Part shown: piece by piece, positions 33,380-62,011 of the stretch
Layout of the letters: every line of letters starts with the position of its first letter
How positions within the stretch are numbered: position 1 is the stretch's first letter
Source of the DNA: Octopus bimaculoides
Lineage: Eukaryota
DNA: 64,000 bases
Reading direction: 5' to 3'
Assembly (NCBI RefSeq): GCF_001194135.2
Contig: NC_068989.1
Span: 733,550 to 797,549 of the forward strand
Program-made: the position numbers and the translations under genes
Notes under the pieces: generated by a model
The model's input: only the letters and a program-made list of their open reading frames with translations
Database searches by the model: none
What the model was told of the DNA's origin: nothing

Positions 33380-34130
33380 GTAGTCTAACGACATACTCTT
33401 TGAGATACTTCGGTCTCATTCCGGGAAGAATAATGCACTTTTTCAGGCTTCCCCATAAACACTGATCCAGTCTTCAGCGTGATTAACCTGATAGGTGTGT
33501 ATAGCCCATGCTGCTCAAGTTACTATACGCACGTCAACAGTCAATATAAATTATTGATCCCGGCCTGACGTAACGTCTAATGATAGGAATGAGGGCGTCA
33601 GCATCCCTTCTGTTGCCCTCGCCACATTCGGTCAAAAGTGGGACCATAAAGGCTCTCTTCATCAGACGTTCTTTCAATAGACCAGAACCGTTTCATCGAT
33701 CTCAGTTTCAACCCCCATCTCCTCCGATCATATTTTGGTGGTTTTCAGCCTAAAACTGGTAAACCTCAGCACAGAGAGACCGCCAATCTACAGAGGTTTT
33801 ACGGCAGAATCCGAGATTTTCCTTGATTAATCTGTACGACCAAGCTGTGCTGAGGAAGTGATTCACGAAAAGCAAAATCTTCCAAGGCGGAACATGGGTG
33901 TCTTCCAGAAAGGAGTTCTTCAATACAGATTCAGAATATCCACACTCCCTTCTGTATTGGCGACGTCTTCGTACCATCCTACGGCAACGGCGCATGATCG
34001 TTTTTTCGTGCAAAATACATGGAAAATGACATGTCGGACAATTGTGGGTAAACGGCAGGACACCGTGTTCCAGGAAAAATGTAATGGCAGTATTATTTTT
34101 ACCGTGGAAACGGAGAACTCCTCCATAAAG
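33380..34130 (-). mobile_element. Degenerate Merlin/IS1016 (ISXO2-like) transposase, copy A
   Basis: CPTC...WKILLF...TSVDWRSLCAEV, then with stops and frameshifts IGGDG-VETEIDET, LIPIIRRYVRPGSIIYIDC*RAYSNL..GYTHL-VNH. Confidence 0.75.
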
Positions 34131-35296
34131 AATGATATTGCAACAGTTGCATAGGATTTTGTGTGTCTGTGCGCACGTGTGGGAGAGAGATAGTGAGTGA
34201 AGGTGATGATGGATGTCTTTTAAGGTCCACACTCATGTAGAAAATGGGACGTCATCATGGTCGTCGTATAAAATGTTTACGGTAGATAACTTATGGAAAA
34301 GATTATAATTTAAAATTTTTGTAATTCAAATATGTCAATGAAAATAAAGTTTAGTTAGTCGTGGAAATAGTACTGAATCTTTTGATACCCCATACATGAA
34401 AATCAACAACTTGGTTTTGGACTGCATAAGGAATATTTGCACCCTGAAAAACTCCAAAATTGATCCACACACCCGTCTCCCTATTCAACAATAAAGGGTG
34501 CGCGAGCGCAACAATCTTTACAGCTCAGAAAACGAAGGACTAAAAGAAATAAAACAGCATGTTATACATACCTGTTGTATACGTCGGTCTTGTTTTTTCG
34601 CTTTAAAGGTAAGCGATTCTCATAGAAGCAAACATGATATTGAATAATTCTCCGTCATACGTCTATTAAAAACTTTAACAGACTTCCAAAACGGGATTTC
34701 ATCTATGTTTATCTCCGTGCGTCAACAAGAAGTTTCCCCAATAAATTCGAAGGGTTAACATCGCACAAGTTCATACATTATTTCCGTAATCTCTAATTGA
34801 AATTAAGAAGCTACCACAACCACCCCATCAGAAACAATCATCATTATCTCCACAATATTTGTACCCTTTAAAAAGAAGCAGCTTTGTTATTTTTCTGAAT
34901 TTATTTTACATTGTGTACACCCAGATTGGAACTTTTACTGTACCTTGCACCAGAGAACATTATAGATTATGTGAAGACAAAACATATTGCCAATGAAAAA
35001 AACGTCTGCTTGCACACATTCGATGAATTTTCAAAATTCTAGTCGTTCTATTGACGGGTTTGTCAATAGAAAGTGCGCTAAATGTTAAAAAAAAAAAAAC
35101 CTCTTTCCATCAGGAAAGGTACATTTACGGAAAACTCTAAGCTGCCATTATATGTAATTTTTCATTTAGTGTTTGATTTTATTTTCGATTGACAATATCT
35201 GCAAGTATGAATTTGCATTGATAAAAAAACTGCCGTTCAGTGATACCAGTTTTGTAGAGATGTCTGTTTGGCAAAACTGCTGCAGGATGAAACTCC

Positions 35297-35851: not shown

Positions 35852-36455
35852 NNNNNNNNNNNNNNNNNNNNNNNNNNNNNNNNNNNNNNNNNNNNNNNNN
35901 NNNNNNNNNNNNNNNNNNNNNNNNNNNNNNNNNNNNNNNNNNNNNNNNNNNNNNNNNNNNNNNNNNNNNNNNNNNNNNNNNNNNNNNNNNNNNNNNNNNN
36001 NNNNNNNNNNNNNNNNNNNNNNNNNNNNNNNNNNNNNNNNNNNNNNNNNNNNNNNNNNNNNNNNNNNNNNNNNNNNNNNNNNNNNNNNNNNNNNNNNNNN
36101 NNNNNNNNNNNNNNNNNNNNNNNNNNNNNNNNNNNNNNNNNNNNNNNNNNNNNNNNNNNNNNNNNNNNNNNNNNNNNNNNNNNNNNNNNNNNNNNNNNNN
36201 NNNNNNNNNNNNNNNNNNNNNNNNNNNNNNNNNNNNNNNNNNNNNNNNNNNNNNNNNNNNNNNNNNNNNNNNNNNNNNNNNNNNNNNNNNNNNNNNNNNN
36301 NNNNNNNNNNNNNNNNNNNNNNNNNNNNNNNNNNNNNNNNNNNNNNNNNNNNNNNNNNNNNNNNNNNNNNNNNNNNNNNNNNNNNNNNNNNNNNNNNNNN
36401 NNNNNNNNNNNNNNNNNNNNNNNNNNNNNNNNNNNNNNNNNNNNNNNNNNNNNNN
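35852..36455. other. Assembly gap (N run); another long gap at 55266-55920, and 10-N gaps at 27063, 31552, 54225, 59412
   Basis: N characters. Confidence 0.99.
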
Positions 36456-36559: not shown

Positions 36560-37734
36560 GATAGAAAGAGAGAGTAATAACAAGTGAATGAGAATAGTGA
36601 CGAAGGGTTAAAAAAAGCGTAAAAATAATTGGAGATAAAATGAAACAAAAACGAAGCCAAAACATTAAGAATTATTGAAAGTGGGTAGAAAATAACACTT
36701 CGTAGTGTAAGTAGTACTATACTAGGGTATCTGTAGAAAGTTGAATGGGATTTCAGAATATAACTAGGAAAAATTCGGATCTTGTGAATTTTCCAAAGTC
36801 CTCTCTCCCACCCTTTTTGAAAAGATTTTTCCTACAAGTTTCTTTATAATCGTAATGTATTCCGTTTGAAAAGTATTTCTATAAAATTTCATTGAAAAAA
36901 AACTCCATTTTCCTAAAAGTTACGAGGGAAAAGCTCGGATCTTGTGAATTTTCCGAAGTCCTTTCCCCCAGCTTCCCGTTGCTTCTGGAGCTGTTTTCAC
37001 ATATGATCCATCCCATTCTTATAAAAATGATAACTCTGTCCAAATTGGTGTGCTAAACGCAAATTGTCATTTCTGTAGAGCTTTAAAATTTTCAAATGAA
37101 ACAAATGGCATGTGCTGCTCAGGCGGTCATGTAACATTGCCATTACTACTAGCTCCTTCTCAACCTCTTATGGATCTTCTGGAAGGCACTTCCATCCAGT
37201 CAAAGGATTTTCTGAACAATATCAGACAATACAACTCTGCATTTCAAATGACATCGTTTGGTGCATCTAAGAAGATAGATAAACATGAATTTACGCCGAC
37301 GTCAAAGTTCAAGGGCAAGTCTATCACTTCATTGGTTCCCTGTTACCCACAAATGAACGACCACAGCTCCTCCAAATTTACTTTATGTTTGGTGTAGAAC
37401 AACAAACCCGAAGGAGGTGTCACAATTTTCAGATGATGGGTCGTGTTAGACACAATGCAGACTGCTGCAAAAGAGTCTATCCACTGACAGCTTTTTGGTA
37501 CATTAAAAAAATCACATAACCCCCTACCCCCAATTTTCCATGACAGGTTAGGGCCTGAAATACTCCAAACGGACTCATAGCATGTTACTTAGTCGAATTA
37601 GCCCATCATTTTCTCCATAAATGCTTTGTTGTCAATGCTGCACTTTCCCATATCAATTGTTTCAACATAACTGTAATATAATATATACAAACTATGCCAT
37701 TTTAATCCTGAGCAATGCTGGGTATCTCTGCTAG
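36560..37734 (+). mobile_element. Internally deleted Helitron remnant with Rep-helicase N-terminal fragment and CTAG 3' end
   Basis: 37050-37400 encodes CHFCRALK..E..GMCCSGG..LP...FLNNIRQYNSAFQMTSFGA, then frameshifted QGQVYHFIGSLLP...QIYF; 3' end cctgagcaatgctggg (decayed hairpin) plus CTAG|T at 37731-37735. The left boundary is approximate. Confidence 0.8.
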
Positions 37735-38879: not shown

Positions 38880-39604
38880 TTACATAAAGATTTCTTGATA
38901 TACAACCACTGCCGCCAGATGACTTTGGCATCTCCTGCAACTCTTCTGGATGTTCTTGTTGAAGTTGGTCAATGCTGCCATAATCCTTGCCTTCAGTTCA
39001 TCTTTGGTGTTACAAGGAGTTTTGTTGGTCTGCACCCACACATAATAATCAAGGGGGTTGCAGTGTGAGAAATTAGGTGACCAGATGTTAGGGGTGATGT
39101 GGTCACAGAAATGGTCTGACAGCCATGACTCGGTTCTCCTGCTTGTGTGGCATGGTGCAGAGTCCTGTTGCCAGGCATAGGGTCTAACAGCAGCCACCCC
39201 CTTGACCCAGGGCAGCACCACCTCCTCCAGGCACTTGATGTAGGCCTCTGTGTTGAGTCTGAGGCTGTGTGGGAAGATGAATGGAAGCATAGCATCGCCA
39301 TCACTAATGATCACTCCAAACACCATGATGTTGACTGGATGTTTGATTTTTATCACTCTTGGGACACATTTTGGGGACAGGGCAAGCCAACGGTTGTTCT
39401 ATCAGAGCTTCCAGTGCAGATGCCAAGCAGTACAGCATGTTGTTTCCAAATTTCTGGTTGAGTGAGTTGCATCATGGTGCTGTTTTTCTCACAGACAGTG
39501 CCCAACTGACCCTACCATACTATGTAGTCAACGAAATAAAAAACAATGTACATGCACGAAATTAAGAATATAAAATTGTGACAATTTACCCATCACACCG
39601 TGTA
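38880..39604 (-). mobile_element. Tc1/mariner DD37D (maT-type) transposon remnant
   Basis: MVFGVI.SDG...WQQDSAPCH...NPLDYYVW with 37 residues counted between the second and third Asp; mariner-like end tacacggtgtgatgggtaaattgtcac at about 39577-39603. Confidence 0.85.
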
Positions 39605-40585: not shown

Positions 40586-41818
40586 ATGGCTCCGAATACT
40601 TCGAGGAAGTTAAACGATGCTGAGAAGGAAATCATTGACAAAATCCCTTCAGCTTCCATTGAAGAAATTAAACAGTTATTGAGTGAACCAGAAGTCCGTA
40701 TCGACTGCCTGGATGAGCAAGGAACTACACCATTACAACATGCTGCATTCAAAGGACGAAGCGACTTGTGTGAGTTGTTCTTACAACACGGCGCCGATGT
40801 CAACTCCAATCAACACATCGATGGTTACACCGCCCTCATGTTTGCTGCCCTTTCCGGTAAACCTGCTCTTGTTCGAAAGATGTTATGTGCCGGGGCAAAG
40901 ACCGACCCCGTGAACCGTGTCAATCGAACAGCCGCTCAAATGGCAGCCTTTGTTGGCTACCACAAATGTGTTTCAACCATAAATAATTTCATTAGCTTCG
41001 ATGAAGTGGAATATTACGCCAAACCACAAGGCCTGGAGAAAGAAGCGAAACTTCCCAAACAATTGGTCGCACCACTGGTAGAACTGCTTAACAACTCTTA
41101 TCTTCACCCGTTAAAGGTTTCTTATTTCTTAGAGGCTAATCCAAGTCTTCTGGAAAATTCGCATAAGGTACAAAACGTTTTAGATATTATGTGCGAAAAA
41201 AGTATGAAAAGTGCTGAGACAAATGATGTGATGGCTATCAAAGTAAATTATTACTCCTTTATGATTCGAAACATCGCCAAATCGTACAATGAAAAAGAAA
41301 AATCGCTAAGTAGTTGGATTAAGAGTTTAGTGAAAGGCAGAGAGAGCGATGGCTTTGCCGAGAAACCCGAAAAGCTTATACGTCAGTCCATGAAAGAATT
41401 TATCTACGTTGAGTCGGATCTTTTTTTGCAATTTATTCGAACTGTGTCTCCTGTAGCCATCGGAGATTATCCCACGGCTATTTCAGTGCTCACTAACTGT
41501 GTCCATGGACAACAGTTTAAAAACGACAATGTCAGTTGTGAAGCTTGTGGAGAAATCGACTTTACAAAGAAATGCTCTGCTTGTAAAATGGTTTACTATT
41601 GTAGCCAACGGTGTCAGAAGCTGCGCTACACTACACACAAGAAGTTCTGTGCTCAGCTTCGAAAGCAATTTGAAGAGCTTGAAAAGAAGAACAAAGATGC
41701 GGAAGATAAAGAGGAATTCTCTGAAGAGAAAAATGGAGAGCAACAGGTAGAAGTGAAGGAAGATAACGGTAAATTAGAAGAGGCTGTGGAGAAAATCGAA
41801 ATTAAATCTGAGGTATAG
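40586..41818 (+). CDS. ANKMY2: Ankyrin repeat and MYND domain-containing protein 2, single-exon ORF, 410 aa
   Basis: Three ankyrin repeats (TTPLQHAAFKG, YTALMFAALSG, RTAAQMAAFVG), central helical region, MYND finger CEAC..CSACKMVYYCSQRCQ...HKKFC, acidic tail; aagATGg start context; candidate AATAAA at 42417-42422. Confidence 0.93.
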   Translation: MAPNTSRKLNDAEKEIIDKIPSASIEEIKQLLSEPEVRIDCLDEQGTTPLQHAAFKGRSDLCELFLQHGADVNSNQHIDGYTALMFAALSGKPALVRKMLCAGAKTDPVNRVNRTAAQMAAFVGYHKCVSTINNFISFDEVEYYAKPQGLEKEAKLPKQLVAPLVELLNNSYLHPLKVSYFLEANPSLLENSHKVQNVLDIMCEKSMKSAETNDVMAIKVNYYSFMIRNIAKSYNEKEKSLSSWIKSLVKGRESDGFAEKPEKLIRQSMKEFIYVESDLFLQFIRTVSPVAIGDYPTAISVLTNCVHGQQFKNDNVSCEACGEIDFTKKCSACKMVYYCSQRCQKLRYTTHKKFCAQLRKQFEELEKKNKDAEDKEEFSEEKNGEQQVEVKEDNGKLEEAVEKIEIKSEV

Positions 41819-45601: not shown

Positions 45602-45760
45602 TTATAGTTTTAAAAATGTTCTAATAGTTTTTTCCCGTTTTGTTTTACAAATTTTTGGGAAGGGAGATATTAGTTCTGATTCGGGAAGACGTTTTTTCAA
45701 GTCATCACGATGAACATTGAGGTATTCTCGGAAGAAGGCCACTGTACTGTTCCATCCTTG
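45602..45760 (-). CDS. Patatin gene terminal exon (QGWNSTVAFF...FLKL*)
   Basis: cag acceptor, TAA stop. Confidence 0.85.
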   Translation of the reverse strand, partial: QGWNSTVAFFREYLNVHRDDLKKRLPESELISPFPKICKTKREKTIRTFLKL

Positions 45761-48700
45761 CTGCAAGACACAGAATAAACCAATATTAGATTCTTCAAAG
45801 AATTCAAAGACATAAAAGAATTGATACAGATGAATAGAAGTCTGTACATACATGCCAGAATTGATAAAATGGAAAATATACTCCTCATTAAATACACTGC
45901 TTATACATCTGTGAGGATTTGGATGTGGGACAGACCAATAGGCTGATCAGCATTAAAAACAAAAATGTCTTGCAATTAACAGACCAGTGGTTCTTAAACT
46001 GGACCAGAATACCCCAGAGGCACATGCTGGATAACACAGCAGACATAATAAGTTTCTGGTTGATTAACCCTTTTGTTACTGTATTTATTTTGAGATGCTC
46101 TGTGTTTCTTTCAATTACTTTAAATATAACAAAGAATTTAGTAAAATAACTTAGTTATCATTCAGCTAGTGTTAGGAACATAAATTGTGACTAAGTTTTG
46201 GTGGAAGATTTTAATTCAAAACTTATGAAAATGACATTTGTATTCAGAGCCAGAGCCGGTTTCAGCCGGGTTGGTAACGAAAGGGTTAAAATAAGCCTTT
46301 TTTTTTTTTTCTCTCTCTTATTGCAAAACACGAAGAGAGAGCTTTCATAAAACCTCAAGTAATGAAGTGGTGTGGAGGGATTTAGCTAGAAACAGTGGTA
46401 GACTTAGTGTTTCCCATTTGTTCCTTTTATTACTATTGTGATAGATTTGGCTCATTTAAGGTTGGAAACAGCATTCCAGTCTTTTTCCAAATTCTCTTGA
46501 TACACTTTCTTATACAACTTTGTCAACAGAGACAACAGAAGTTCTGTTACCTTAATCAGGAAGTTTTTGTCGTCATGTTCCAAACAGAAATCTGTGGTGT
46601 CAACATAACCTGTGTTTATACCAACTGTACGATGTTTATCTTCTTCCTAGAAGAGTACCAGAAAATATAACAATGAGCTGTAGTAGTAGTAGTAGTAGAG
46701 ATATTAATGATTGCACAAATTTTTGACATCCTCAAAGCTGCATCTAGGAAAACAGCCACTTATGTTTTCATTGCTGGTGACTTCAATTACTCTGAGATTG
46801 ATTGAGGAACCTTCTGTTGGCCACAAAATGCAAATGATTTCCTTGATTCAGTGCTGGATCCAAGCAGGACCCAAGTAGTCACCTCCCCCACAAGATGTAA
46901 CAACACTTTAGACCTGCTCTTTACCACTATTCCTGAAACGGTTAACAGTGTCACTACTGGGGGAACCTTTGGGCTACTCCGATCATGCTATGATCATTGC
47001 CTTTCTGTCTCTTATGGGCAGAAACAAGAACCACTACTACCTCCAAACTGTTCACTTTGACTGGAAAAATGCCGATTGGAATTCTTACTGAACTCGGTTA
47101 CAATGCCTAAACTGGCTGGAATTTTGCAATTCTGCACTTCAGAACATCCTAAACTCAATCTGGGCTACATCTGAAGCATCAGTACCATACAAATGCTTTA
47201 AAACTCCCAAAAGTGCAATTTGGGAGGCTACAGCAGTTCCACTTGTCGGGAAAGATTCTCGTGATGATGAACAGGAATAGAGACTACATAGAACAGAGAA
47301 GAATAGAAGGCACATCTTCCAACCATCTCAAGCAAATGACAAAAAAAGGCAGTGCTTGAATTTTAACAATTTATAGCAACCATCCACGACAGCAAAGTGT
47401 TCTGGAAAGATGGACATTTGAAGTAGGGACCTCACTCTCCAGTCGGCCTTCCTCGCAATCCCCACACAGGTCGGATTACGGATGATCACAAAGAATGTGC
47501 AGAACTTATTGCAGAATGTTCCCTGTGAATCCATATTTAAAATGGATTGTACAGTCTTTAATAACATTGTTGTCGTTAATGGTAGAGTCTTTAAAAACAT
47601 CTCTCCATGAAATATTGAAGACAAAACAGGGTTAAAATTCAGTGACCAGCTGCGTATTTTTCATATTTCCAGTAACTTTACATAATGTTTCCATTCCTAC
47701 TGGAAATCTAAAAACACAGCAAACTTAGAAGAGCTCAGAGAAATGAGCAAATATTGGTTTTGTGGAATCAGTTAAGACATTATTATCAGGAATATGATGC
47801 AAGCAATAGAAAAGAGAGTCTGAAAGTAGTAATTCTAACCAGCAAAACACAAAAGAAAATCTTGCATTCATCATGTTCCTGATACTTATCTTGTGGAAAG
47901 TGGTGAGCATTCCAGGCAATATGCTTAGTGGCATTTCATCTGATGTTATGTTCTGAGTTGAAATTCCACTGGGGTCAACTTTGCTTTCCATCCTTTCAGG
48001 GTTGATAAAGTGAGTACCAGTTGGGCATTGGAGTTGATGGAATCAATAAAAATGGGACGTAGGATAACGAAGGTAACAGGGACGATAACGAGAGACAAAA
48101 CAATGACTCTTCCTTCAACATCCATCACAACATTATCTTCATTAGAGATTATCACCACTTGACTCATCAAGGACAAGATGAAAACTAGCTCTGATGGCAG
48201 TGACTATGAATATAGTGATGATAAATTCTGAATTATATAAAACATCAATACCACAATGGTGGTGGTGAAGGTAGTCATATAAAGGATTGTGGGAACATTA
48301 GTAATAATAAAATTTAACATATATAAAACTAATATCAATACCACTATGTACGCTCGTTTAGTATTCGTCAACATGGTCTCCATTAATGCTGAAAGGTATG
48401 ATTGTAAACTATTGACTTGTCTGCCAAAGTATCCAAGAAAGCGAGACTGGACGTTAATTCCTTTTGTTTCAAGAATTTGAATCAATTCTTCATATTCAAT
48501 CTACAAAAAGAAAAGGATTTCTCAGATTCTTACAGAAGATTTTAAAATTTGTTAGCAATTAAGATCTTTAATTTATGCAAGAGAAACATATTCCTACACA
48601 CACATACAAATAATTAGAAAAGAAATTCCAAGTGTGAAAGCAAAACCTGGAATCAAAGGGCTTTAAAGTTTAACCTAGTAAAATATGGCGTAAGCATTTT

Positions 48701-51543
48701 TGGTGGAATTATTCCAGGAGTCTAGAAGGAGTATAGAAGAGAGAATAAAAAAGGATTTATAAACAGATATTTTTGTTTCATTATTGATTTGTCTTTGAGA
48801 TGAGATCCAAAACTAAACTACCAAAAGACTTTACCATCTTTTGAATCCTGAGAGAATCCTTAAAGATATTTCTGAATTCAGTGTTCTGTCTTTATTCTCT
48901 GTGCTCTCAAGGAATATGAAAGATTCAACAATGTTCAGAAGATTACCTTTCACATGTTTTGGGTTGCTGCACAACTTGACCAGGCAGAGACACAAAGTTT
49001 TCTTTAAATTTCTAGACAAACCATAGATGTCACCTGCTGAATCAAATGCAGAAATCAATGATTGCGATCCATGCTCTATATATGACTGGCAACGTGTCAG
49101 TCATTAGCAGTCTCTTATTTGCTCTTAAATTTGATCCTTACTAAATTAAAGACACTTCTTACATATATCCCCATGTTTTGGTCTTAGAGAGTGTGATAGA
49201 ACTTGGAAACAAAATACAACACAAAGACAGTAGGCGCATCAAGGTGTCCCTGTTTCACACTACTCTGCTAAAAACCTTCCTGACGACTGTCTTTGTAATC
49301 CCCCAAAATATCGTAACCATTTGTCCAGCCCTCTGGCTGTGAAGAGGGAACAGACATAATGCCCATAGCAAATCTGCCCATCTACTATGGGAAATAAAAG
49401 GATAGTATCGCAAGTCTAAATCCTCTGAATTCATGAACTATATGAAAGGTGATTTATTAATTCAAAACTCAATATTCCAATAAATAATCATACTTTTTCA
49501 CATTTTTTTCACTAAAAACCTTCCTGATTACCTCCTTTGTAATCCCGATAAACATCATGACCATTTGTCCAGCCGTTTGACCGCGAAAAGAGAAGAGACA
49601 GACAGATGGCTGGACATAATGCCCATTGTAGTAAGATAAATAGAGAACTAACTAAACCACAGACATTTCCAGATGAATCTTCAAACAAAACAAAAAATTA
49701 TTTTCATCAGACTCCTGATTATCAATGCCATTCAGATTCTTTAAAAGTTCCTTATTCCAAGGGGCCTGTCCCACATCTCTATGAACCTGTCACAATCAAG
49801 AATACACACACACACACGTACACTTATGTTCCAAAGACAATCTCATATCTACTGTTGTTGTAATGAATTTAGTTTTACCTCATTATCAAGATTTTTGTCC
49901 AAAGTCATAAAGATATCCTTAATATCCCATTCATTAACAATTACTTTGTCAAACAGGAGGAGATGGTCTTCTTCACTTAGTTCAGGATCCTGTAGGAAGG
50001 AGAACCATTAATACAATTATCAATAATAATTAACAAATTAAAAATAATAATGATGATGACTTCTTACCACAACAGAAGGCAACCCATTCAGTGTACTCTA
50101 ATTCTATGGGGAGTGTTACTGACCCAAAATGGGAGAAGAACATTGAAGGATAAAGCTAATTACTTTATCTGGTCTGGAATCCTTGCAAATCTGGAGAAGA
50201 TGAAATTCAGAATCAATCATACAGAAAACAGATTCCATCACGCATCGGTGGGTCCTTTCAAACTGACCGAGCAGATCACAAATTTAAGTTTTGTTCTCCA
50301 CTCTCTTCCTTCATCAACATCCTTGCTGCTCCTATACAACATCCACTCTCACACAAATGACACTTTATCCCTCCTTAACATTTTCCAGTTATGCATTATC
50401 CACTTGCAACCTAGACACCACACATCACACACACACACACACACACATACTTCCTGAACAAAGACTTCACAAGCATCTTCCAGCAAAGATAGACTAAACT
50501 TGTCTATCCTACTTCTATCTAGAAAACATCATACCATGCCTCCGTAACCATGAATCACTCTCAGGCGAGAGGCCTATCAGTATCAATGAGAATCTGTCCT
50601 GGTGGAGCGTATCCATAACTACAACCCAATGATTGGCTCCTTTCTTCCGAGCCAGAAGACACTTCGTCCCATCTGCTTTTGTGATTGATCTGGTCAATGT
50701 AACATATAACAAACTCCTCAATGCTTTTAGAATGGTTGGACGACATATGCATGGAAATGTCAGGTGTCTCTGGTACCGTGGGTTAGGGGAATAGTAAAAC
50801 AACCTGAGATGGCTAAAAATACTGGAAGAGAACGTGAAATTCTAGAACAGAAGAAACAAAACATTCAAAAGACATATATTCCAGGAGAATATTGTTTTAG
50901 AACAGTGTTTGTATTTAGTTTACAACTCACATGTAAAACAGCAATGAACATGTCCATATTGATGGTTCTTCCGTGTTCCGGGTTGTGTTTAGCAATGACC
51001 TGAAAAATAATTTGAGAGTTTTTATTCTAATAAATTTATTGCATTAATTTAATTTATATTAAAACACTAGGCTTAATGGAAATACAATGAAGAAGAAATA
51101 CATAGCCTCTGAGTTTTATGAAATGCCTAGATTATAATATGCACAACCAGGGTCATTGCTGTTTACAATTGTTTAAAGAGATACCAAATATAAATTAAAC
51201 TGAATTAGAAATATTACAACACACATATAATGTTTGTATACACACACACACATCTGTATATATATATATTCATACTCTCTGAGTGGTTGGTGTTAGGAAG
51301 GGCATCCAGCTGTAGAAACTCTGCCAAATCAGATTGGAGCCTGGTGTTGCCATCCGGTTTCACCAGTCCTTAGTCAAATTGTCCAACCCATGCTAGCATG
51401 GAAAGCGGACGTTAAATGATGATGAATGTATGTATATATATATAAGAAGATGGAATGAATAGGCTTTAATTACAAAACACAACAATTGTTTCTGTGCAAT
51501 GGTAACAGCCGTTAGTTACTGAGTTTTCCTATCCTACAATTAC

Positions 51544-51613
<70 letters not shown>

Positions 51614-53765
51614 ATCATTTAACGTCCATTTTCCATGCTGGCATGGGTTGGACAGTTTGACCAGAGTTGGCCAACCAGAGAGCTGCCCAGGCTTCAATTG
51701 TCTGCTTTGACCTGGCTTCTATGGCTTGATGCCTGCCACCTTTCTTAATGCCAACCCCTGCGGATTGGACTGGGTGCTTTTTGTATTGCCAAGCCTGGTA
51801 CTTTTTATGTGACACAGATACCAGGGGGATTGCCACGTGACTTGTGAGACAAAGACCTCTCACCTGGGAAAGAGAAAGGCACTGATCCAGGTGAAAGGCT
51901 AGAGTATAATAGAGGGATAGGGAGAGTTGTCTTACTGTAGGGGAGATGCTTGGGTACTCCAGTAGGAAAAGAGAGGAGAGGAAGGAGAAATAGATTGTGT
52001 TGGAGATGCATCAGGACCTTCTCTCAGGGAGCAGAATTGGCACAGAGGGGATAGATGTTATATATATAGACACAGGCCTGCATGCGCCTACACACATGAA
52101 GGCACATGGCCTAGTGGTTAGCGAGTAGCAATCATGGGTTTCATTCCCAGATCTAGCAGTGTGGTCTTGAGCAAAACACTTCGTTTTATGTTGCTCCCAT
52201 CCAGTCAGCCGTGAATGGGGGTACCTTGCAACAGACTAGCCTTCTAAAACTATGCAAAGTGCATTGTGATCAGTGAATACTTATTACACGTGTTTGGAAA
52301 TACTAACCTTCACCAATTGATCAAAGGCTCTACAAATATTTTTATGCTTTCCGCATTCATCCAATTTCATGCTACAGTTTTGTTTTCTGCCCCTGTAAAA
52401 TGAATGCTTATTTCTTAAACTGTATTTGATCAATGGCATTTTAACAATAATTCAGAATGAGTGGTAAAGATATACTGCTCAACATATTAAACATGAATTT
52501 ATGAAACAAATTGTTACAATTCTATAATACTTCATTTTAATGAGATTACCTCAAGTTTAATCAAATTCTGAGGGAATTTTTTTAAATACAGTCTTTGTTA
52601 GCAAATGCTGCTGTTCTTGTACAAAGAATCTTTGTCTGGTACTGGATCGACATATGGGTAGTAAGAGCTCTGCAGTCTTGGTTGACAATCTTATTAGAAA
52701 TGGTGTCTTGATAAAAATACCGGTTGGTGGTTAACCTTAAAATACAAACTTCACTATTGGTTGGCGAAGGAGTGCTTATAAACAGAAATATGCGTGACAC
52801 CAGTATCTGCCACGACGGCAATTTCGTTTGGCTTGATGGGTCTTCTCAAGCATGACATAATGCCAAAGGTCTCGGTCATTGCCTCCGTGAGCCCCGAAGC
52901 TCGAGAGAAAACAGTTGTATAAAGAAATGCCAACTACTTAATTTGAACAGAACCTGTGAAAAAAGAGGACCCAGGAAGGTGTAGGATGAAGTGGTGAAAT
53001 CTGATCCCAGGATATTGAGCCTCATGAAGAAGATAATATGTGGTACGGTACTTGAGAATACTTGCCCATCTATGCCAGCACAGTGAAAATTAGGTTCTAG
53101 AAACGTGTATGCACACCTCAGGATTGCTCAGCCACTATGTCCTTGTCAAGCTTTCAATTGCTGCTTTCTCATCTTCTCATCTACCTATCACTCATCTCTC
53201 CATCACTTTTGTATTATTCTGCAACTCTTATTAAAGGAGGGCAAAATTACATATCATATAATTATCTTTTATGTTCTGCTAGTCATCACTCTCTCTTCTC
53301 TGAATACTTCCTGTTGACATCTATTCCTGCATTTTAAACTTTGTTTTTCCTCTCTTATATTTGCCATTGACCACACCCTTTCTGTGCTGCCAATAATCTC
53401 TACGTCTCTCTCTCTCTCTCTCTCCTGTATTACTTCCCCTTGACAGCTGTCTCTCATTCTTAACACTGTACCCCCTTTTGTTCACCACTCATTACATTCT
53501 CTCCAATATATGTATAATCATACATGCAATGTGTACTACATTTGTGCCTATATATGTACAATAAGAACTTACTTGGCTAGTTTGGTTTCTGGGTATCTAT
53601 TAAGTTCATAACATCCATACTCTTTGAGTCGGTTCTCCAAATGGGTCCGCATAATCTCTGGTTCATCATCTGAAAACTAATTAGGTTAAAACATTGTTTG
53701 TAAGATCTTTGATTAGTTTATACAAGTACATAATTTATATTAACTGCAATGTGTTCCCTAACTTG

Positions 53766-53805
<40 letters not shown>

Positions 53806-54257
53806 TATTACCATAAATGGTTCCTTTGTCTTTTTCTTCATGCTAGCATAAACCAGAAACATTTGCGGTATGCCAGCTTTCCAAGCAGTTCAGTCCTGCA
53901 AAGTTTATAGTGTGACACCAGTGCAACAGCATGACCATTACCGGCCATTCCATACATTGATTTAGGTGTATATGATACCTAGGGACTATTTAGTTCTGAA
54001 GATATCCAACTTCAGCAAGCACAGCACAGTGCTAGCAACATGACACCAATATGCAAATTCTTCTAATTAATTTTTCAAAACAGAATTACCTTCACATATT
54101 GTAAGCTGAGTTGTCCACTAGTTTGAAGCTAAATAGATATTTCATTCATACTAAAGTGAAGAATAAAATGTCTTTGGAAGAGTGAAAGTGGCAAGTATTT
54201 TATTCATTGAAATACCAAAAAAAANNNNNNNNNNAAAAAAAAACAAAAAACAGTAAC

Positions 54258-54290
<33 letters not shown>

Positions 54291-57200
54291 TACCAAGAGA
54301 AATCCAAGCGTCTTTTTATTAAAGGTATCAAATCTGACTGATTTGTCAAAGAATTCGTGCAATTGCTCAAGAGGACGAAGTCGATTAATGAAATTATCTT
54401 TTGGTGCCATTGAAAGCCACCAACCTGGAAAAGAAAATTAACTTTTAAACAAAGAATTTATATTACAGTAATCCCTCGACAATTGCAGGTGATACGTTCC
54501 AAAAACACTCCATGATAAGCGAAAATCTCGAAAGTGGAAACCAATAATGTATATTTTTTTTTATTATTCTTATAATTTGTTTATATTCATTTCATTACAA
54601 ATGCAAAACAACACCATGGAGGAATTGATATAAGCTTAAATAATAAACCGTGATACAGGAGGGGATTACTGTATATAGAGTAAATACAATTCTCATTGAA
54701 CATTAAATGCTGTAGCTGTGTTTTCCAAAGTTAAGTGGAATAAAAAATCCCTTACTTGAAAAAGTGATGAAGGCTGGCAACAAAAACAACAAAAATATTG
54801 CTTCAATTAAGTACAGAAACATGAGCATAAAATGAATGACTATGCACTGAGGTAAACAAATACACACATATACATGTGTGTACCTGCATAGGTGTGTGTG
54901 TGTGTGTGTGGTATTAGCGATTTTCTAGCACCCATTTATAAGACATGCAGAAAGCCTGGGGTTAGGATTACACAAATACATAAATCACCTGTTGTTACTG
55001 CAACTAGATAAAAGTAAGACACACACACGGGGAAGTATTACACAGGGAGATGAAAGTGTACACAGAAAATACAATATGGATAATATACAATAGAGATAAA
55101 GAAGGTGAGAAAACTTACCCTCTATGTACAACCATTTAATTTTTAATGAACCTCAAATTTGAAGTTTCAGCTTTTTTATTAAGTGTCATTAATAAGAATT
55201 GTTAATATGTGTTTAATACGTATCATCATCCAGTGTTTTAAATCTGGGCTTTGTCCCTTTTAACGNNNNNNNNNNNNNNNNNNNNNNNNNNNNNNNNNNN
55301 NNNNNNNNNNNNNNNNNNNNNNNNNNNNNNNNNNNNNNNNNNNNNNNNNNNNNNNNNNNNNNNNNNNNNNNNNNNNNNNNNNNNNNNNNNNNNNNNNNNN
55401 NNNNNNNNNNNNNNNNNNNNNNNNNNNNNNNNNNNNNNNNNNNNNNNNNNNNNNNNNNNNNNNNNNNNNNNNNNNNNNNNNNNNNNNNNNNNNNNNNNNN
55501 NNNNNNNNNNNNNNNNNNNNNNNNNNNNNNNNNNNNNNNNNNNNNNNNNNNNNNNNNNNNNNNNNNNNNNNNNNNNNNNNNNNNNNNNNNNNNNNNNNNN
55601 NNNNNNNNNNNNNNNNNNNNNNNNNNNNNNNNNNNNNNNNNNNNNNNNNNNNNNNNNNNNNNNNNNNNNNNNNNNNNNNNNNNNNNNNNNNNNNNNNNNN
55701 NNNNNNNNNNNNNNNNNNNNNNNNNNNNNNNNNNNNNNNNNNNNNNNNNNNNNNNNNNNNNNNNNNNNNNNNNNNNNNNNNNNNNNNNNNNNNNNNNNNN
55801 NNNNNNNNNNNNNNNNNNNNNNNNNNNNNNNNNNNNNNNNNNNNNNNNNNNNNNNNNNNNNNNNNNNNNNNNNNNNNNNNNNNNNNNNNNNNNNNNNNNN
55901 NNNNNNNNNNNNNNNNNNNNGATTAGTTTGTCCAGGCAAAAGTTCAGGACACGAATTGCAAGAAAAGAATAGCAATGTGATATAGGACAGTGGAACTTGT
56001 GAGTGATTTTGACCAACCTATTGAAATATGAGACTTACCATCAAAACAATGGATTGGATAATTGCACAGAAGTCCTCCATCAGCATAATGCATGTCTGTC
56101 CCATCAGAAGCATAATATTTTGGTGGATGAAACATTACAGGGATGGACATTGACATACGCACAGCCAGGCGTACTGGCATATTTGGAGTTGTCTTTGTGT
56201 GGCAATATTCAACAGCCATGTGGTTAACATTAGTCACAACCACACATAATTCTCGACCATAATATTTGTAGATCTTGAAGAAGAAAGAAAATGAAACCAA
56301 CATTTGAGTTTGGCATAAAACTTGATTAAAAAGGAAAACATTGAAGATGTATTTACTATTTCAAATTATTTTATTAGAATTTTACTAATTTTTTCCCTTC
56401 CAAACCAACAACAGTATATAATTCCAGTATATTTTAGCAATCTTATAGGAATGTCAAGTAAAATTGATTTTGAACATGAAATAAAGGTGATTCAAACCTG
56501 ATATTTTCTTGTCCTATAAATCAAAAATTGGTTTCAAATTTTGGCACAAGGCCAGCACTTCGATTACATTACTCAACTGGCATTTGTTTTATTGACCCGA
56601 AAGGCTGAAAGCTGAAGTTGACATTAGCAGAATTTGAAGGCAGTTTATCGCAGATGTATTCCAGATACATTTCTTCTTTACTATTTCGATCTATTTCACA
56701 TCTCCCTCTCTATTTAGAAATATTGGATAATGTCATTGACAGATGTTGACAAAATGATGTTCTACTTTAATTTATCTAACTGTAAAAGAAACTAACTTAC
56801 TAATTTGCATTAATGAGCTAATTAAGGCTCATTTATAGTCTCACTGCTGTTTGCCTCTGTGTTGTCACTTAGTTCAGGAAACTTTAGAACAGAAACTATG
56901 GGGTTTAAATTGTAAGTCATAGGACAATATGGAAAGTAATTGCATTGATGACAATAAAAGTTATGACAACTACAATACTGACAGCTAGTGATGACACTGA
57001 TGACAATGATTGACTAATAATATCTATTTCTGTTCTAATAATCAATCAGAAAGCTAGAAAATACTCACCTGCCAGAAAGTAACCTCTGCACTGCCAGTTT
57101 TGTCTTTGAGTACATTTTTAAACCATGTGTCAATTTTTTTGCCAGGATTCCAGCCAAAGTTCTTGATTAGGTTTGGTAAAAGGCTTAAATATCCCCATTT

Positions 57201-60200
57201 ATGATCTACAAGAAAAAAATTAAAAGCAACAATGTGACAGTTAATTATAGTTTTGGTAACAAGGCATATACATCTTCAACTGCTCCAAGAGACAAATGTG
57301 AAAATAAACTTCTCTAGAAATTTAATCATCAAACATATTTGTTGTAGATTCTTTGTTTGGCATATGCTCATTTTCATAAAAAGTGGGAAAATGTAGTAAA
57401 TAATTTACATTATCCTAATATATTACTGGTACCTTTTTTATTGAACAAAGTAGCATTAAAATGATAATTTAGTCTCAGCAGGAACTGAACTTAGAAATAT
57501 ATGAGTTACAATCAAATGTCTTCTAATCCAGCATCCTAGCCTCTGAACCATAACTATTACATTATATGTATACAGGGGACATAGTTGCTTTCATTTAAAT
57601 GTAGCAGCCATATCTTCCTCAACAATTCTTTAACTATATTTTTAAAACGGCACCTCTATCTAAAGACAGTTTGTCTTAATATAGAAGGAGAAGAGCTACA
57701 GCTCATATGCTTCAGATAATTGCTAAGCATTTGATTGGTTACCTGTGTCATGTGACATTACAGAAAGCCCAACCTCATTCCTCTCTGCAGAGGCAGCAGT
57801 AGATTATGACACAACTGGATCTGAAAGCAAAATAAACATAACTACTCTAATGACTATATATCTAATTGTGAAAACCAGTCTTGTTCATAGTCACAAACAT
57901 ACTGAGATGAGGTTGACTAAAGGAGATTGTTTGTTATAATGATTTCCATCAGCTTTGAGATGCTACAAGTGACTATGACATGTTGGGAGTTGGTAGGTTA
58001 AAGGGTTTGCCCTTTTTAGGAATGAGATATAATTATGTCTGTTTCAATAGATTAAAATAAATCTTGTTAAAGAGACAAATATTTGGTGAGGACAGAAGCT
58101 GGCTTTGGAGGTCAACTGTTTGTAAGAAACTGTGAACCAGTTGCCTTATCAAATTTGAGGAATTGAGGGTATTTTCATACTTGAGGACTGTGTGAGATTG
58201 AGGCAGAAGAAGTGAAGCAGTGTGTGTGTGTGTTAGCTTTGTCAGCAAGATTCTACATAGATTCGATTTGGCTGATGAGTGGCTGGTAGAGAGCTTGCAT
58301 GCAAAGAACTGAATGAAGGCATCCTTTACATCCCAGATAGTGTATCTTAGTTCTCAGTTATTGATAACGACTGACTTTTCCCTTGTGTTCTATGCAATAG
58401 GCTTTACCACAGAATCATAGCCTCAAGTGAATTGGAAACTTGAAGTTGTGTAGCTGATATGAAGAGTCATACCAAAAAAGATGCTGTGATATCCTAATAC
58501 TCCATAAATACTAGCATGTGATATCCAAGATTTTCATAAAACCAAGGCTTGATACAAACACAAATAACATTACTTTGATAAAGTATCTTCACCTTCCATA
58601 AAACTATTACATTGATATCCCTAATATGTGAAAGCCACACCCTCTCCAAGTAATTACAGTACAATATTAATATCTGTATTATCCTGTGATAGCTGCATCT
58701 TCCATCAAATTATCATAATCATTTAACATCTCCTTTCTATGCTGGCATGGGTTGGACAGTTTGACAAGAACAAACAAGCCAGAAGGCTCTGCCAGGTTCT
58801 ATGTCTGTTTTGGCCCTTTCTACTGCCAACCGCTTAACAGAGTGGACTGGGTGCTTTTTACATGGTACCAACACCAATGAGGTCACCAAGTAACCACAAG
58901 ATAAGACCCCTCAACAGTAGTCTATCAATATCCCTATTACGAATATAACGGCCACACATTCTGCCAAAATGTTATAGTAGTACTTACCAAGCATCAACTT
59001 GCCAATGTCTTGACTTAAGTAGTCCAAGAGTTCAGTGCTTGAGACGCCAACACTGATTAACGCAGCAACCATGGCCCCAGCGCTTGCACCAGCCAAGCGT
59101 TTTGTATTATTTAATACACCAAGTTCTTCAAGGACCTGGAAACAAAAGAAAACAACAACAGCTCAGTTTAAAGAAAAAAGAGAATAACAATAATAACAAC
59201 AACAGAAATAAATTTATTTCTCAAACGTGTGATAATGCTATAAATAGCATGATCAAGGTAAATTATCCATTTATTGCAGAAAACTATGTTACTGGGCAGC
59301 CATGAGACTCGAACTCACATCTCTGTGATTACGCGTCAAGTGTTTTACCATTAAACTAAACTGCCCAGCAATGAATTCTTCTGCAATTTTAGAACTTATA
59401 ATAAGACGCTANNNNNNNNNNCAGCAATGAATTCTTCTGCAATTTTAGAACTTATAATAAGACGCTAACATTAAATTCAACTTTACGATGAAAGTAAACA
59501 AACAAAGTTTGTTCTTTTTTAGAAGCGTTGAGATATCCTGATCACGCTATTTATAGCATTGTCACACGTTTGAGAAATAGATTTATTTCTGTTCTTACAA
59601 TACATCTCAACGCTTCTAAAAAAGAACACAACCTGCCAATGCATTAGTAGGTCTTTCTCATCTGCTGTCTTTGGTACTTCTTGTCTTTTCTATTGCACTC
59701 AAAGTGTTTGCAGGTAAGAGAGTAGAGATTCCTCCACTATCATCATCATCAACATCATGATTTAACATCTGTTGTCCATGCTGGCATGGGTTGGACGGTT
59801 TGACAGGAGCTGGCAAGGCTGGAGAGCTGTGCCAGGCTCCAGTCATCTGTTTTGGTATGGTTTCTGCAGTTGGATGCCTTTCCTAACACCAACTTTACAG
59901 AGTGTACTGGGTGCTTCTTAGTGGTGCCAGCACAGGGAAAGTACATGTGGGTGTGTGAAAATATTCTAGCCTCCACGACAGTCTCAAATATTACAGAGTG
60001 GAAGGTTATGCTTTAGGACATCTCAGAATTTCAATTGTGGTCTTCCATTGTAACATTTTCTTGTATTTCAGAATAAAAAAACGGTCTCTGGTAGTCATTC
60101 ATTGTCTATCCTTTGGGCACAACCAATCCAGTAAAACAGATGTGTGATAATCATTGCCTCAATCTTTGTCTTTTCTGTTTGTTCTTGGAATTTTAAGCAT

Positions 60201-61314
60201 TGGTTTTCTTTTGCTTTTGGTTAATTACTAGAAGTAGATGAAGTTCGATGTGGTTCTGATAAGGAATCCACATCTTACAAGCATAAAGAAGTGCTCTGGC
60301 AACTACTGCTTGGTAGAAATTATCAATAGAATTATCAGCAAAATTACCAGCTAGGTATTGAAGAGGGTTCAATTCTCAGACCCCTAATATTTATTATAGT
60401 CTTCCACACCACAACAGAAGAATTGAAGAAGATATTTGTGGCAGCTCCTGTATGTTGAATCTTTTTATCACTCTCCCTCTTTTCCCCTCCCTCTTTTTCT
60501 CTCTCTATTGGTACCTGTCTCTTTTTCACACATTACTTCCTCCTCCATTTATCATTGACAATACACCTCATTCTCTCATTTTCATTACTCCTTTATCTAT
60601 CACCCTGTCTCCTTTCCCCCTCATGGTTTCCTCACCAAAATTCAGCTGATAGGCTTCTATATCAGTCTTTCGATATTCCCCCCTCTATCCCCCCCCCTTC
60701 ACTCAAATTCTTTCAGTTTCATCACTTTCTGGGTGAGGTTGATTTTTAGTTTTGCTGAAGTTAAGACAACCTCTCCAGTGCTGGTGCCATGGTATTAGGA
60801 AAGGCAAATGGTTATTAAAAAGTATGTCAAAATTGAACCTCTAAGTAATTATGTGGTCTCTGGCCCATCTATGGAAGCATTAACTTCAAATAAGAAATTA
60901 GTGGATACTGATGACTTATCCAAACTATGACAGTACAGAAGGTACACACAAAATGATGATGATGATGACAACAATAATGATGACATTGATAATAATGATG
61001 ACACTGTAGCCTATGTAAGATTTCAATCTGCTTTAAATAAATGTGACTCATAGAAAAACTTAAAATCTCACATGTAAAGTCCCACAATAAGCAATGCCTT
61101 TACTTCCACCACCTTCAAACACCAAATTTTCAAAGGGGTATTCATAGTCTTTCAGATCGTTAAGTTGTGCTTTACCAGTATCATGGATTTCAGTGGTAAC
61201 GGCACCCGTTCTTTTCGAAATGCATTTTTCTTCATCACATCTAACTAATTCATACAAATCAGAATCGGAATGAGAATGCTTTAATTTTCTGAAACATTTT
61301 GTAACATTTCCCAT
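45602..61314 (-). CDS. Uncharacterised patatin-like phospholipase (ExoU/VipD-like) with EF-hand module, 12 coding exons, 558 aa
   Basis: Exons 61314-61072, 59135-58988, 57205-57069, 56273-56039, 54424-54294, 53676-53573, 52392-52308, 50999-50931, 49989-49879, 48500-48342, 46646-46551, 45760-45602 splice in phase (1677 nt). Motifs: FEGGGSKG (oxyanion hole), GASAG (nucleophile Ser), YADGG (catalytic Asp), EF loop DKNLDNEIEYEE. Confidence 0.88.
46068..46285. mobile_element. piggyBac-type MITE (TTAA|CCC...GGG|TTAA)
   Basis: TIRs ccctttt-gttac / gtaac-gaaaggg with TTAA at 46064-67 and 46286-89; an inverted sister copy lies at 62012-62222. Confidence 0.85.
46551..46646 (-). CDS. Patatin gene exon 11 (EEDKHRTVGINTGYVDTTDFCL...LIK)
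   Basis: tag/gtaaca boundaries; T.GI.T...TTDF is typical of the patatin C-terminus. Confidence 0.88.
46740..47640 (+). mobile_element. CR1/L2-type LINE ORF2 fragment (endonuclease to RT linker), degenerate
   Basis: YVFIAGDFNYSEID*, QVVTSPTRCNNTLDLLFT. Confidence 0.7.
48342..48500 (-). CDS. Patatin gene exon 10 (IEYEELIQIL...TNTKRAYIV)
   Basis: tag/gtattg boundaries; the donor could alternatively be 3 nt earlier. Confidence 0.82.
49879..49989 (-). CDS. Patatin gene exon 9 (DPELSEED...TLDKNLDNE)
   Basis: cag/gtaaaa boundaries, EF-hand entry. Confidence 0.82.
50931..50999 (-). CDS. Patatin gene exon 8 (VIAKHNPEHGRTINMDMFIAVLH)
   Basis: cag/gtgagt boundaries, phase 0-0. Confidence 0.75.
51546..51611. 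repeat. (TA)n microsatellite; many other (CA)n, (GA)n, (CAT)n, (TAA)n tracts occur throughout
   Basis: Direct reading. Confidence 0.95.
52308..52392 (-). CDS. Patatin gene exon 7 (GRKQNC...RAFDQLVK)
   Basis: cag/gttagt boundaries, phase fit. Confidence 0.75.
53573..53676 (-). CDS. Patatin gene exon 6 (FSDDEPEIMR...PETKLA)
   Basis: tag/gtaagt boundaries; only the upstream of two tandem acceptors keeps frame. Confidence 0.78.
54294..54424 (-). CDS. Patatin gene exon 5 (WWLSMAPKD...KTLGFLL)
   Basis: cag/gtatgt boundaries. Confidence 0.88.
54466..54671. mobile_element. pogo/Tigger-like MITE with TA target duplication
   Basis: TA|CAGTAATCCCTC ... GAGGGGATTACTG|TA. Confidence 0.85.
56039..56273 (-). 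CDS. Patatin gene exon 4 (IYKYYGRELCVVVTN...YADGGLLCNYPIHCFD)
   Basis: aag/gtaagt boundaries, DGG motif. Confidence 0.92.
57069..57205 (-). CDS. Patatin gene exon 3 (HKWGYLSLLPNLIKNFGWNPG...TFWQ)
   Basis: tag/gtgagt boundaries, open frame, phase fit. Confidence 0.88.
58988..59135 (-). CDS. Patatin gene exon 2 (VLEELG...LAGASAGAMVAAL...)
   Basis: cag/gtaagt boundaries, GxSxG motif. Confidence 0.92.
59201..59593. mobile_element. Inverted-repeat (about 55 bp) element enclosing a tRNA-like sequence
   Basis: aacagaaataaatttatttctcaaacgtgtgataatgctataaatagcatgatc versus its near-identical reverse complement ending at 59593. Confidence 0.75.
59293..59366 (-). pseudogene. tRNA-Thr(CGT)-like pseudogene
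   Basis: Hand-folded cloverleaf: acceptor GGCAGTT/GGCTGCC, D-stem GTTT/AAAC, anticodon loop CGCGTAA (G33 instead of U), bulged anticodon stem, T-arm GTGAG-TTCGAGT-CTCAT. Confidence 0.6.
61072..61314 (-). CDS. Patatin gene coding exon 1 (MGNVTKCF...FEGGGSKGIAYCGTLH)
   Basis: tttcag acceptor 4 nt before ATG, gtgaga donor. Confidence 0.88.
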
Positions 61315-62011
61315 TTTACTGAAAGAGAAAATAAAATAGCATTGATTATCCAGTTCAATACACACACACACAATCTTTTATCTTATATATAATCAACATC
61401 AAATCACAATCAAATGGAAATTGTAGTTGTGGTCCCCGTGCTGGTGGCATGAAAAAAGCACCATCCGAATGTGGCTGATGCCAGCACTGCCTTGACTGGC
61501 TCCCGTGCTGGTGGCACGTAAAAAGCACCATCCAATCATGGTTGATGCCAGCCTCCTCTGGCCCCTGTGCCAGTGACACGTAAAAAGCACCCACTACACT
61601 CTTGGAGTGTTTGTCTTTAGGAAGGGCATCCAGCTGTAGAAACATTGCCAGATCAGACTGGAACCTGGTGCAGCCTCCTGGATTTTCAGACCCCAGTCGG
61701 ACTGTCCAACCCATGCCAGCATAGAAAACAGACATTAAACAATGATGGTGGATTATATGTAATATTCCCAAAGTACAGACAGATACTTTGGAGTGAACAC
61801 ATAGAGAAATGTGCTGGGAATCTCCAACCAAATTTCACAGTTTTCCCCATCTACCAGTGCAAAGAAACGATTTCTGTATAAGAACATTTAAATAAAGAAA
61901 ATTTATTTATTGGAAAATACAGAACATGCCTAAATATGAACGCATAACCAACTTTGGTCTCAGTATATAATTTAATTCATAATCACATATCCATCACTGC
62001 ATATTCCATCT

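Follow-up and report, generated by a model that had tools for sequence, protein, structure and literature searches.

A putative calcium-regulated patatin-type lipase gene of Octopus bimaculoides, with an ExoU/VipD-like catalytic domain and an EF-hand module

Within a stretch of 64,000 nucleotides (nt) of the Octopus bimaculoides genome (contig NC_068989.1, positions 733,550 to 797,549; called the window here and numbered from its first letter), we analysed the intron-rich gene LOC106879487, which runs on the minus strand from position 61314 to 45602. Our results point, with a probability of roughly 0.7, to a cytosolic, calcium-regulated lipid acyl hydrolase of the patatin fold, in which an ExoU/VipD-like core is combined with an EF-hand module, encoded by a member of an ancient, vertically inherited family not seen in vertebrates. 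This provides a testable picture of an unstudied enzyme family, with a bacterial-type patatin core, a putative calcium sensor and a lipid anchor that is probable in most of the animal members. The gene and its family assignment were already in public databases, and invertebrate members of the CDD family Pat_ExoU_VipD_like (cd07207) had been listed before (PMC5127104); the calcium-sensor module, the probable lipid anchor and the conservation of the introns across phyla are new here. A preliminary description of the same DNA, made from its letters, had proposed a complete spliced open reading frame (ORF) of 558 amino acids (aa) with 11 coding introns and an ExoU/VipD-like patatin domain, and had missed the EF-hand pair, the Met-Gly start and the full-length bacterial relatives described below.

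To define the gene, splice sites were read from the DNA and the predicted exons were joined as they stood, the exon peptides having first been searched separately. The gene has 12 coding exons and 11 introns, all with GT...AG borders, and the joined exons form a single open reading frame of 1,677 nt, encoding 558 aa and a stop codon, exactly as had been proposed. The product is identical to RefSeq XP_014784574.1 (isoform X1 of O. bimaculoides LOC106879487, named 'uncharacterized'), and the same exact sequence is present in UniProt as A0A0L8G3E6, labelled 'PNPLA domain-containing protein'. These data confirm that the octopus gene is intact and real and that its model is already in public databases. 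Its parts are as follows.

45602..61314, minus strand: coding span of LOC106879487 isoform X1; the joined exons equal XP_014784574.1 / A0A0L8G3E6.
61072..61314, minus strand: exon 1 (aa 1-81); its ATG at 61314 starts the protein with MGNVTKC, aa 1-34 are disordered in the model, and block I GGGSKG lies at 61096-61113.
58988..59135, minus strand: exon 2 (phase 0 in, phase 1 out), with block II GASAG and the nucleophile Ser99 at 59076-59090.
57069..57205, minus strand: exon 3, middle part of the patatin domain.
56039..56273, minus strand: exon 4, with block III MSMSIP at 56139-56156, block IV DGG with Asp241 at 56073-56081 and the start of the FDGWW motif.
54294..54424, minus strand: exon 5 (aa 255-298).
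53573..53676, minus strand: exon 6, its acceptor being the upstream tag| at 53677.
52308..52392, minus strand: exon 7, long helix (aa 330-366).
50931..50999, minus strand: exon 8, with the degenerate first EF-hand loop (aa 367-378, 50949-50984).
49879..49989, minus strand: exon 9, with positions 1-7 of the second, canonical EF-hand loop (49879-49899).
48342..48500, minus strand: exon 10, with positions 8-12 of that second loop (48486-48500) and its exit helix.
46551..46646, minus strand: exon 11, conserved C-terminal block with Arg480.
45602..45760, minus strand: exon 12, with the conserved QGWNSTVAF helix (45734-45760), the basic tail and the stop codon TAA at 45602-45604.

A splice acceptor precedes the ATG by 4 nt, which implies an additional exon in the 5′ untranslated region. 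For exon 6, a second acceptor (cag|) located 7 nt beyond tag| was considered and rejected, since it breaks the frame, while the orthologues and RefSeq isoform X2 support tag|. Isoform X2 (456 aa) is an exact suffix of the 558-aa protein that begins at Met103 in exon 2, downstream of the oxyanion loop and Ser99. As a real product it could not be an active lipase, and an alternative 5′ exon may have given rise to it as an artefact.

The N-terminal half of the protein contains a patatin domain. The Pfam Patatin model (PF01734) matched aa 64-251 with an E value of 1.2e-29 (score 104.3 bits, cut-off 27.7), an alignment that takes in profile positions 1-188 of 191, and three separate exon peptides matched the same model individually. 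The four blocks of patatin-fold enzymes, including the bacterial and eukaryotic forms of block III, have been defined previously (PMC5127104), and all four were found, together with the Ser99-Asp241 dyad, so that every motif quoted in the preliminary description was present. Block I (ENLVFEGGGSKGIAYCG) includes the oxyanion loop GGGSKG (aa 68-73), in which G68, G69, G70, K72 and G73 are kept in at least 90% of 98 relatives, and block II (LAGASAGAMVAAL) includes GASAG (aa 97-101) with the nucleophile Ser99. In block III, AVRMSMSIP (aa 213-221) ends in MSMSIP (aa 216-221), where S217 is kept in at least 90% of the relatives and P221 is invariant, while block IV, within YADGGLLCNYP, has DGG at aa 241-243, with Asp241, and is likewise conserved in at least 90% of them. 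The FDGWW motif that follows (aa 253-257) is nearly invariant, and its D-G is invariant.

The AlphaFold2 model of the protein was confident (predicted local distance difference test score 89.3; predicted template modelling score 0.86) and thus predicts one compact unit, with the EF-hand module packed against the catalytic core. When this model was compared with solved structures using Foldseek, all 32 PDB matches at E ≤ 0.001 were patatin-fold lipases, the best being VipD (E = 5.7e-11), followed by CapE/CapV, potato patatin, ExoU, PlpD and iPLA2-beta.

To place the domain among the patatin groups, we compared a patatin-domain profile with solved structures. VipD (1.4e-22) and ExoU (6.6e-20) ranked first, followed by PlpD (7.7e-14), CapE (1.6e-9) and CapV (2.9e-6), while iPLA2-beta (PNPLA9) was the sole vertebrate PNPLA matched, at 0.035. 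A search with the single N-terminal sequence retrieved, at E ≤ 0.1, only VipD (3.8e-15), ExoU (8e-10), PlpD and a CBASS (cyclic oligonucleotide-based antiphage signalling system) lipase, and no PNPLA among the solved structures at E ≤ 1. The top NCBIfam model was that of the Legionella effector VpdC (8.9e-20), a match far below the cut-off of that model, and block III has the bacterial-type form S-x-x-x-P, not the eukaryotic A-A-P, with Met in place of the Ala of A-S-x-x-x-P. According to a 2016 review (PMC5127104), cd07207 already holds proteins of sea urchin, sea anemone, Trichoplax and lancelet; the review names species only, and the relatives that we found in those taxa are 40-56% identical to the octopus protein. 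The far better profile E values of VipD and ExoU than of iPLA2-beta support the placement of the catalytic domain, by its sequence, in the ExoU/VipD-like branch of patatins and not with vertebrate PNPLA/iPLA2, as had been suggested in the preliminary description. The alternative, that the protein is a divergent member of the canonical animal PNPLA/iPLA2 group whose resemblance to bacterial effectors is superficial, could draw on its UniProt label and on the fact that the four blocks are common to all patatin-fold enzymes. It is nevertheless extremely unlikely given this ranking, the bacterial type of block III and the finding that the nearest full-length relatives outside animals are bacterial proteins with about 35% identity over the whole length.

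Comparison with known systems showed where these likenesses end. The Legionella VipD and VpdC and Pseudomonas ExoU proteins share with the octopus protein G-G-G-x-K-G, G-x-S-x-G, S-x-x-x-P and D-G-G, but in a structural alignment VipD and ExoU were only about 15% identical to it, and superposition outside the core was poor (TM 0.24-0.36, root-mean-square deviation (rmsd) 14-24 Å). In contrast to these two effectors, the octopus protein has no secretion signal and no match to their C-terminal host-factor-binding domains; what it carries in their place is a pair of EF-hands with a conserved helical module at the C-terminus, and its gene has 11 introns. The whole protein is not effector-like, and its likeness to ExoU and VipD ends at the catalytic domain. 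Vertebrate iPLA2-beta also has the patatin fold and a Ser-Asp dyad (fold match E = 1.3e-5), but the octopus protein differs from it and from PNPLA1-9 in general in having no ankyrin repeats, another regulatory module and another form of block III. In the viral library, the best fold matches were patatins of giant viruses of protists (among them Edafosvirus and the Mimivirus lineage, E = 1.3e-19), and one patatin of the Mimivirus lineage aligned over 465 columns at 3.5 Å rmsd, although giant-virus patatins are only 15-21% identical to the octopus protein. A relative from Exaiptasia is named 'Uncharacterized protein R571', after mimivirus R571.

The defence lipases CapV and CapE of CBASS have the same fold and dyad and ranked high in Foldseek, while their sequence matches were weak (1.6e-9 to 2.9e-6); their activation depends on cyclic nucleotides and the formation of filaments and does not involve an EF-hand. 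This fold in common, weak matches to phospholipase effectors in PADLOC (E = 1.8e-8) and the cytotoxic or host-manipulating nature of the closest solved relatives are compatible with a different role for the octopus enzyme: triggered by calcium, it would damage membranes as an executioner of innate immunity or cell death, acting like the CBASS patatin effectors rather than in routine lipid signalling. We regard this role as possible but on balance unlikely, given that the PADLOC and other defence matches were generic and far weaker than those to VipD and ExoU, and that the Pfam search found no sensor or oligomerisation domain of an immune effector, only EF-hands.

The C-terminal half of the octopus protein consists of the long helix at aa 330-366, an EF-hand pair at about aa 367-433 and a conserved helical block ending in QGWNSTVAF. 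In the second EF-hand loop (aa 415-426), the canonical ligand positions 1, 3, 5 and 12 are occupied by D, N, D and E, and helices at 404-414 and 424-433 flank the loop. Across the 98 aligned sequences, position 12 is Glu in 86 for the second loop and in 84 for the first. The family profile drew matches of the calmodulin type, the C-terminal half matching EF-hand proteins and not effectors, and in relatives from the sea anemone, the acorn worm and bacteria the Pfam EF-hand models exceeded their cut-off over the corresponding region. Neither a C2 domain nor PLA2_B was found in the Pfam search of the octopus protein. Group IV cPLA2, a cytosolic, calcium-controlled Ser-Asp lipase and a distant fold match (E = 4e-3), is used here as a working analogy: it senses calcium by its C2 domain, whereas the octopus protein would use an EF-hand, and the latter is not a member of the cPLA2 family. 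Should calcium control prove real, animals would possess, beside the C2-domain cPLA2, a second and independent means of coupling calcium signals to phospholipid cleavage.

At the other end of the protein, a Met-Gly start was observed in 69 of 114 animal members, most of them with MGxxxS/T and often with nearby cysteines, and in none of nine bacterial members. The octopus N-terminus is MGNVTKC. No signal peptide was detected, the highest 15-residue hydropathy in the first 60 aa being -0.02, and no transmembrane segment was found in the octopus protein. Phospholipases are known components of cephalopod venoms, and a venom-type enzyme was one option in the preliminary description; the lack of a signal peptide makes a secreted venom or salivary phospholipase very unlikely. 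The protein also has no transmembrane segment, its Met-Gly start is typical of cytosolic acylated proteins, its EF-hand is of the intracellular type, and the family also occurs in non-venomous sponges, placozoans, echinoderms and amphioxus.

From the sequence and the model, the octopus enzyme would most likely be a phospholipase A or a lysophospholipase, with the Ser99-Asp241 dyad predicted to act together with the GGGSKG oxyanion hole. Its substrates would be phospholipids or lysophospholipids, from which it would release acyl chains on the cytosolic side of membranes, and N-myristoylation of the Met-Gly terminus could anchor it there, although the motif is imperfect in octopus. Calcium bound at the loop of aa 415-426 would switch the enzyme on or steer it to membranes, and since only the second loop retains its calcium ligands, a single Ca2+ site probably controls it.

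Several observations weigh against this reading. In cephalopods the first EF-hand loop (aa 367-378) is degenerate, with Gly for Asp at position 5 and Met for Glu at position 12, and the two loops of the octopus protein would thus not both be calcium-competent. The match of the Pfam EF-hand models to octopus aa 406-433 (E = 3e-4, 20.9 bits against a cut-off of 25) is below the gathering threshold. Position 6 is Lys in octopus and also in Argonauta, not Ser or Thr, making myristoylation of the octopus protein uncertain. The fold ranking within patatins is shallow, with TM-scores of only 0.24-0.37 over the whole query, and the subgroup placement thus rests on sequence. The absence of the family from vertebrates rests on two match lists, each of the best 120 matches. 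Finally, we found no enzymatic, expression or localisation study of any family member in the literature.

The family is broadly distributed in animals. Among the matches listed, named relatives came from molluscs, an annelid, echinoderms, hemichordates, amphioxus, cnidarians, a sponge and Trichoplax, and 382 cluster representatives of a 50%-identity library matched at E ≤ 1e-30; some metagenomic members are very long (1,178-2,271 aa), with the module embedded. The relatives are labelled uncharacterised or hypothetical, or after distant matches ('YqhO-like', 'R571'), and a literature search for the gene, its accessions and invertebrate patatin and EF-hand proteins returned nothing beyond the 2016 review on ExoU (PMC5127104), in agreement with the earlier view of the enzyme as uncharacterised. 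No vertebrate, tunicate, arthropod or nematode names appeared in the two best-120 lists, one of which came from an amphioxus query. This is suggestive of the absence of the family from these four groups; the loss in vertebrates proposed earlier is consistent with both lists, within the best 120 matches that each of them holds.

The family is strongly expanded in several marine phyla, with more than 20 paralogues in amphioxus and several each in bivalves, in echinoderms such as sea stars and in hemichordates (acorn worms). Lineage-specific expansion of this kind is typical of invertebrate immune gene families and would favour the executioner role. Among the matches listed, however, there were just two octopus members, one of which lacks the catalytic serine.

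To estimate the age of the gene, the exons of the Nematostella, Trichoplax and amphioxus genes were mapped on their own loci, and the introns were projected onto the protein alignment. Nine of the 11 octopus introns match at least one of these three genes in exact position and phase, and the other two have the same phase and lie within one alignment column. Three introns coincide in all three comparison genes, including the one that splits the second EF-hand loop. These shared introns indicate that the gene structure predates the split of placozoans, cnidarians and bilaterians, and they exclude a recent transfer or contamination. The family therefore dates at least to the common ancestor of these three groups and has been vertically inherited, which agrees with the earlier description of the gene as ancient and fully domesticated.

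The same data bear on the possibility that LOC106879487 is a pseudoenzyme, a decaying pseudogene, a bacterial contaminant or a recent acquisition. Close bacterial relatives do exist, isoform X2 begins after Ser99, and the octopus paralogue LOC106880002 lacks the nucleophile serine. Nevertheless, the frame is open over 12 exons with the catalytic residues intact, the protein is 84% identical to its O. vulgaris orthologue, 11 spliceosomal introns are present, nine of them shared across phyla, octopus repeats lie inside the introns, and the bacterial sequences group apart in a clade that has 100% bootstrap support. We consider this possibility so improbable that it can nearly be discounted.

The paralogue itself (LOC106880002; 490 aa, 42% identity), which lies outside the window, has G-V-G-T-G for G-x-S-x-G and G-C-G for G-G-G in the oxyanion loop. 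Its EF-hand loops are both degenerate, yet its MGSGLS start is of the textbook type. By its sequence it looks like a catalytically dead copy.

Full-length bacterial homologues, named 'patatin-like phospholipase family protein', were found in Myxococcota, including Cystobacter fuscus, and in Actinomycetota (such as Ilumatobacteraceae and Nanopelagicales). They match octopus residues from about 57 to 520; identity is 34-39% across the whole protein and about 50% within the patatin domain, and they carry an EF-hand pair at the same place. Their genes lie on genuine, gene-dense bacterial contigs and were found in 61 species-representative genomes, mostly of Actinomycetota and Myxococcota, that of C. 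fuscus being complete. Unlike the octopus gene, they have no introns and no Met-Gly start, and they form a separate clade.

In a neighbour-joining tree, animals and bacteria were divided by a single split. When more distant patatins were used as an outgroup, the bacterial clade received 100% bootstrap support, while animal monophyly was recovered in only 5-10% of replicates, and the rooted trees leaned to a bacterial clade inside animal diversity. One gene transfer between the domains, in either direction, is likely, and the full-length bacterial relatives offer a clean case for gene exchange between bacteria and early animals. A joint and decidedly tentative reading, which we think rather improbable as a whole, would be that the animal patatin and EF-hand proteins are phospholipases with a calcium switch and a lipid anchor and belong to an ancient, so far undescribed metazoan family that vertebrates and ecdysozoans lost. 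They would either supply the fatty acids from which marine invertebrates make oxylipin signals or cause calcium-triggered membrane damage in immunity, and a single transfer between domains, to or from Myxococcota and Actinomycetota and leaning from animal to bacterium, would have taken place.

The bacterial loci have neighbours of their own. At 12 myxobacterial or proteobacterial loci, a gene for Peptidase_C92 (permuted papain-like, NlpC/P60-type) lies just downstream of the patatin and EF-hand gene (L001 11494-12195, L004 4506-5189, L005 9511-10245, L006, L007, L009, L012, L013, L016, L020, L056 and L064), and in the annotated loci L001, L004 and L005 the two genes overlap by 4-11 nt. This arrangement looks like a conserved two-gene module, and the Peptidase_C92 partner is absent from the actinobacterial branch. 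In two actinobacterial loci, a gene of the animal haem peroxidase family (PF03098) adjoins the patatin and EF-hand gene (L002 7391-9790, minus strand; L040 349-2091). In addition, several of these patatin proteins have been named 'arachidonate 5-lipoxygenase' by the Joint Genome Institute, the Pfam domains listed for them being only Patatin and EF-hands. These neighbours and names may reflect a link to fatty-acid oxygenation or annotation noise.

Within the window, three of the introns of LOC106879487 contain assembly gaps.

59412..59421, no strand: assembly gap of 10 N in intron 1; coding sequence untouched.
55266..55920, no strand: assembly gap of 655 N in intron 4; no exon missing.
54225..54234, no strand: assembly gap of 10 N in intron 5, about 60 nt beyond the donor of exon 5, within low-complexity sequence.

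The reading phase is preserved across all three gap-bearing introns, and the orthologues from O. vulgaris (84% identity) and Argonauta read straight across the three junctions. In the 98-sequence alignment, none of the 97 relatives has residues between the flanking amino acids at the junctions of exons 1 and 2, 4 and 5 or 5 and 6, and introns 1, 4 and 5 are themselves at positions common to other phyla. Taken together, these results indicate that no coding sequence is missing at the gaps. In particular, an exon hidden in the 655-N gap was ruled out, as the phase fits across it and the relatives have no extra residues there.

The window is AT-rich animal DNA (GC content 0.21-0.42). A tblastn search of it detected no tandem paralogue, with nothing found outside the 12 exons. 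The window was also searched for genes corresponding to the two bacterial neighbours, Peptidase_C92 and the haem peroxidase, with no credible match. Three more gaps lie outside the gene (27063-27072, 31552-31561 and 35852-36455), the last of which, of 604 N, is bordered by simple repeats with CT/GA-rich and TA-rich runs. At 40586-41818 on the plus strand, tail-to-tail with the patatin gene and about 3.8 kb from it, there is an uninterrupted ORF of 410 aa in which Pfam recognises ankyrin repeats (Ank_2 1.2e-17) and a zinc finger of the MYND type (zf-MYND 4.7e-8). It resembles an ANKMY2-like gene and, being a single exon, may be a retrogene.

A short dispersed repeat with a core of about 60-160 bp was found at about 16 places in the window, in both orientations and with 70-89% identity (for example at 6855-6912, 11113-11169, 22241-22320, 51373-51425, 51613-51665, 58709-58870, 59753-59855 and 61647-61747). 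These places include introns 1, 2 and 7 of the patatin gene and the region upstream of it, and the repeat is probably an element like a short interspersed nuclear element. A reverse-transcriptase fragment lies at 11960-12337 on the plus strand (Pfam RVT_1 7.8e-5, below the cut-off), and the ORFs at 38880-39356 (minus strand), 37050-37397 (plus strand) and 33750-34232 (minus strand) appear transposon-derived by eye, with no Pfam match. The introns of the patatin gene also contain microsatellites, namely (GT)n at 53770-53810, (TTA)n/poly-T at 54240-54290, beside the 10-N gap, and a (TA)n-type run at 51532-51618.

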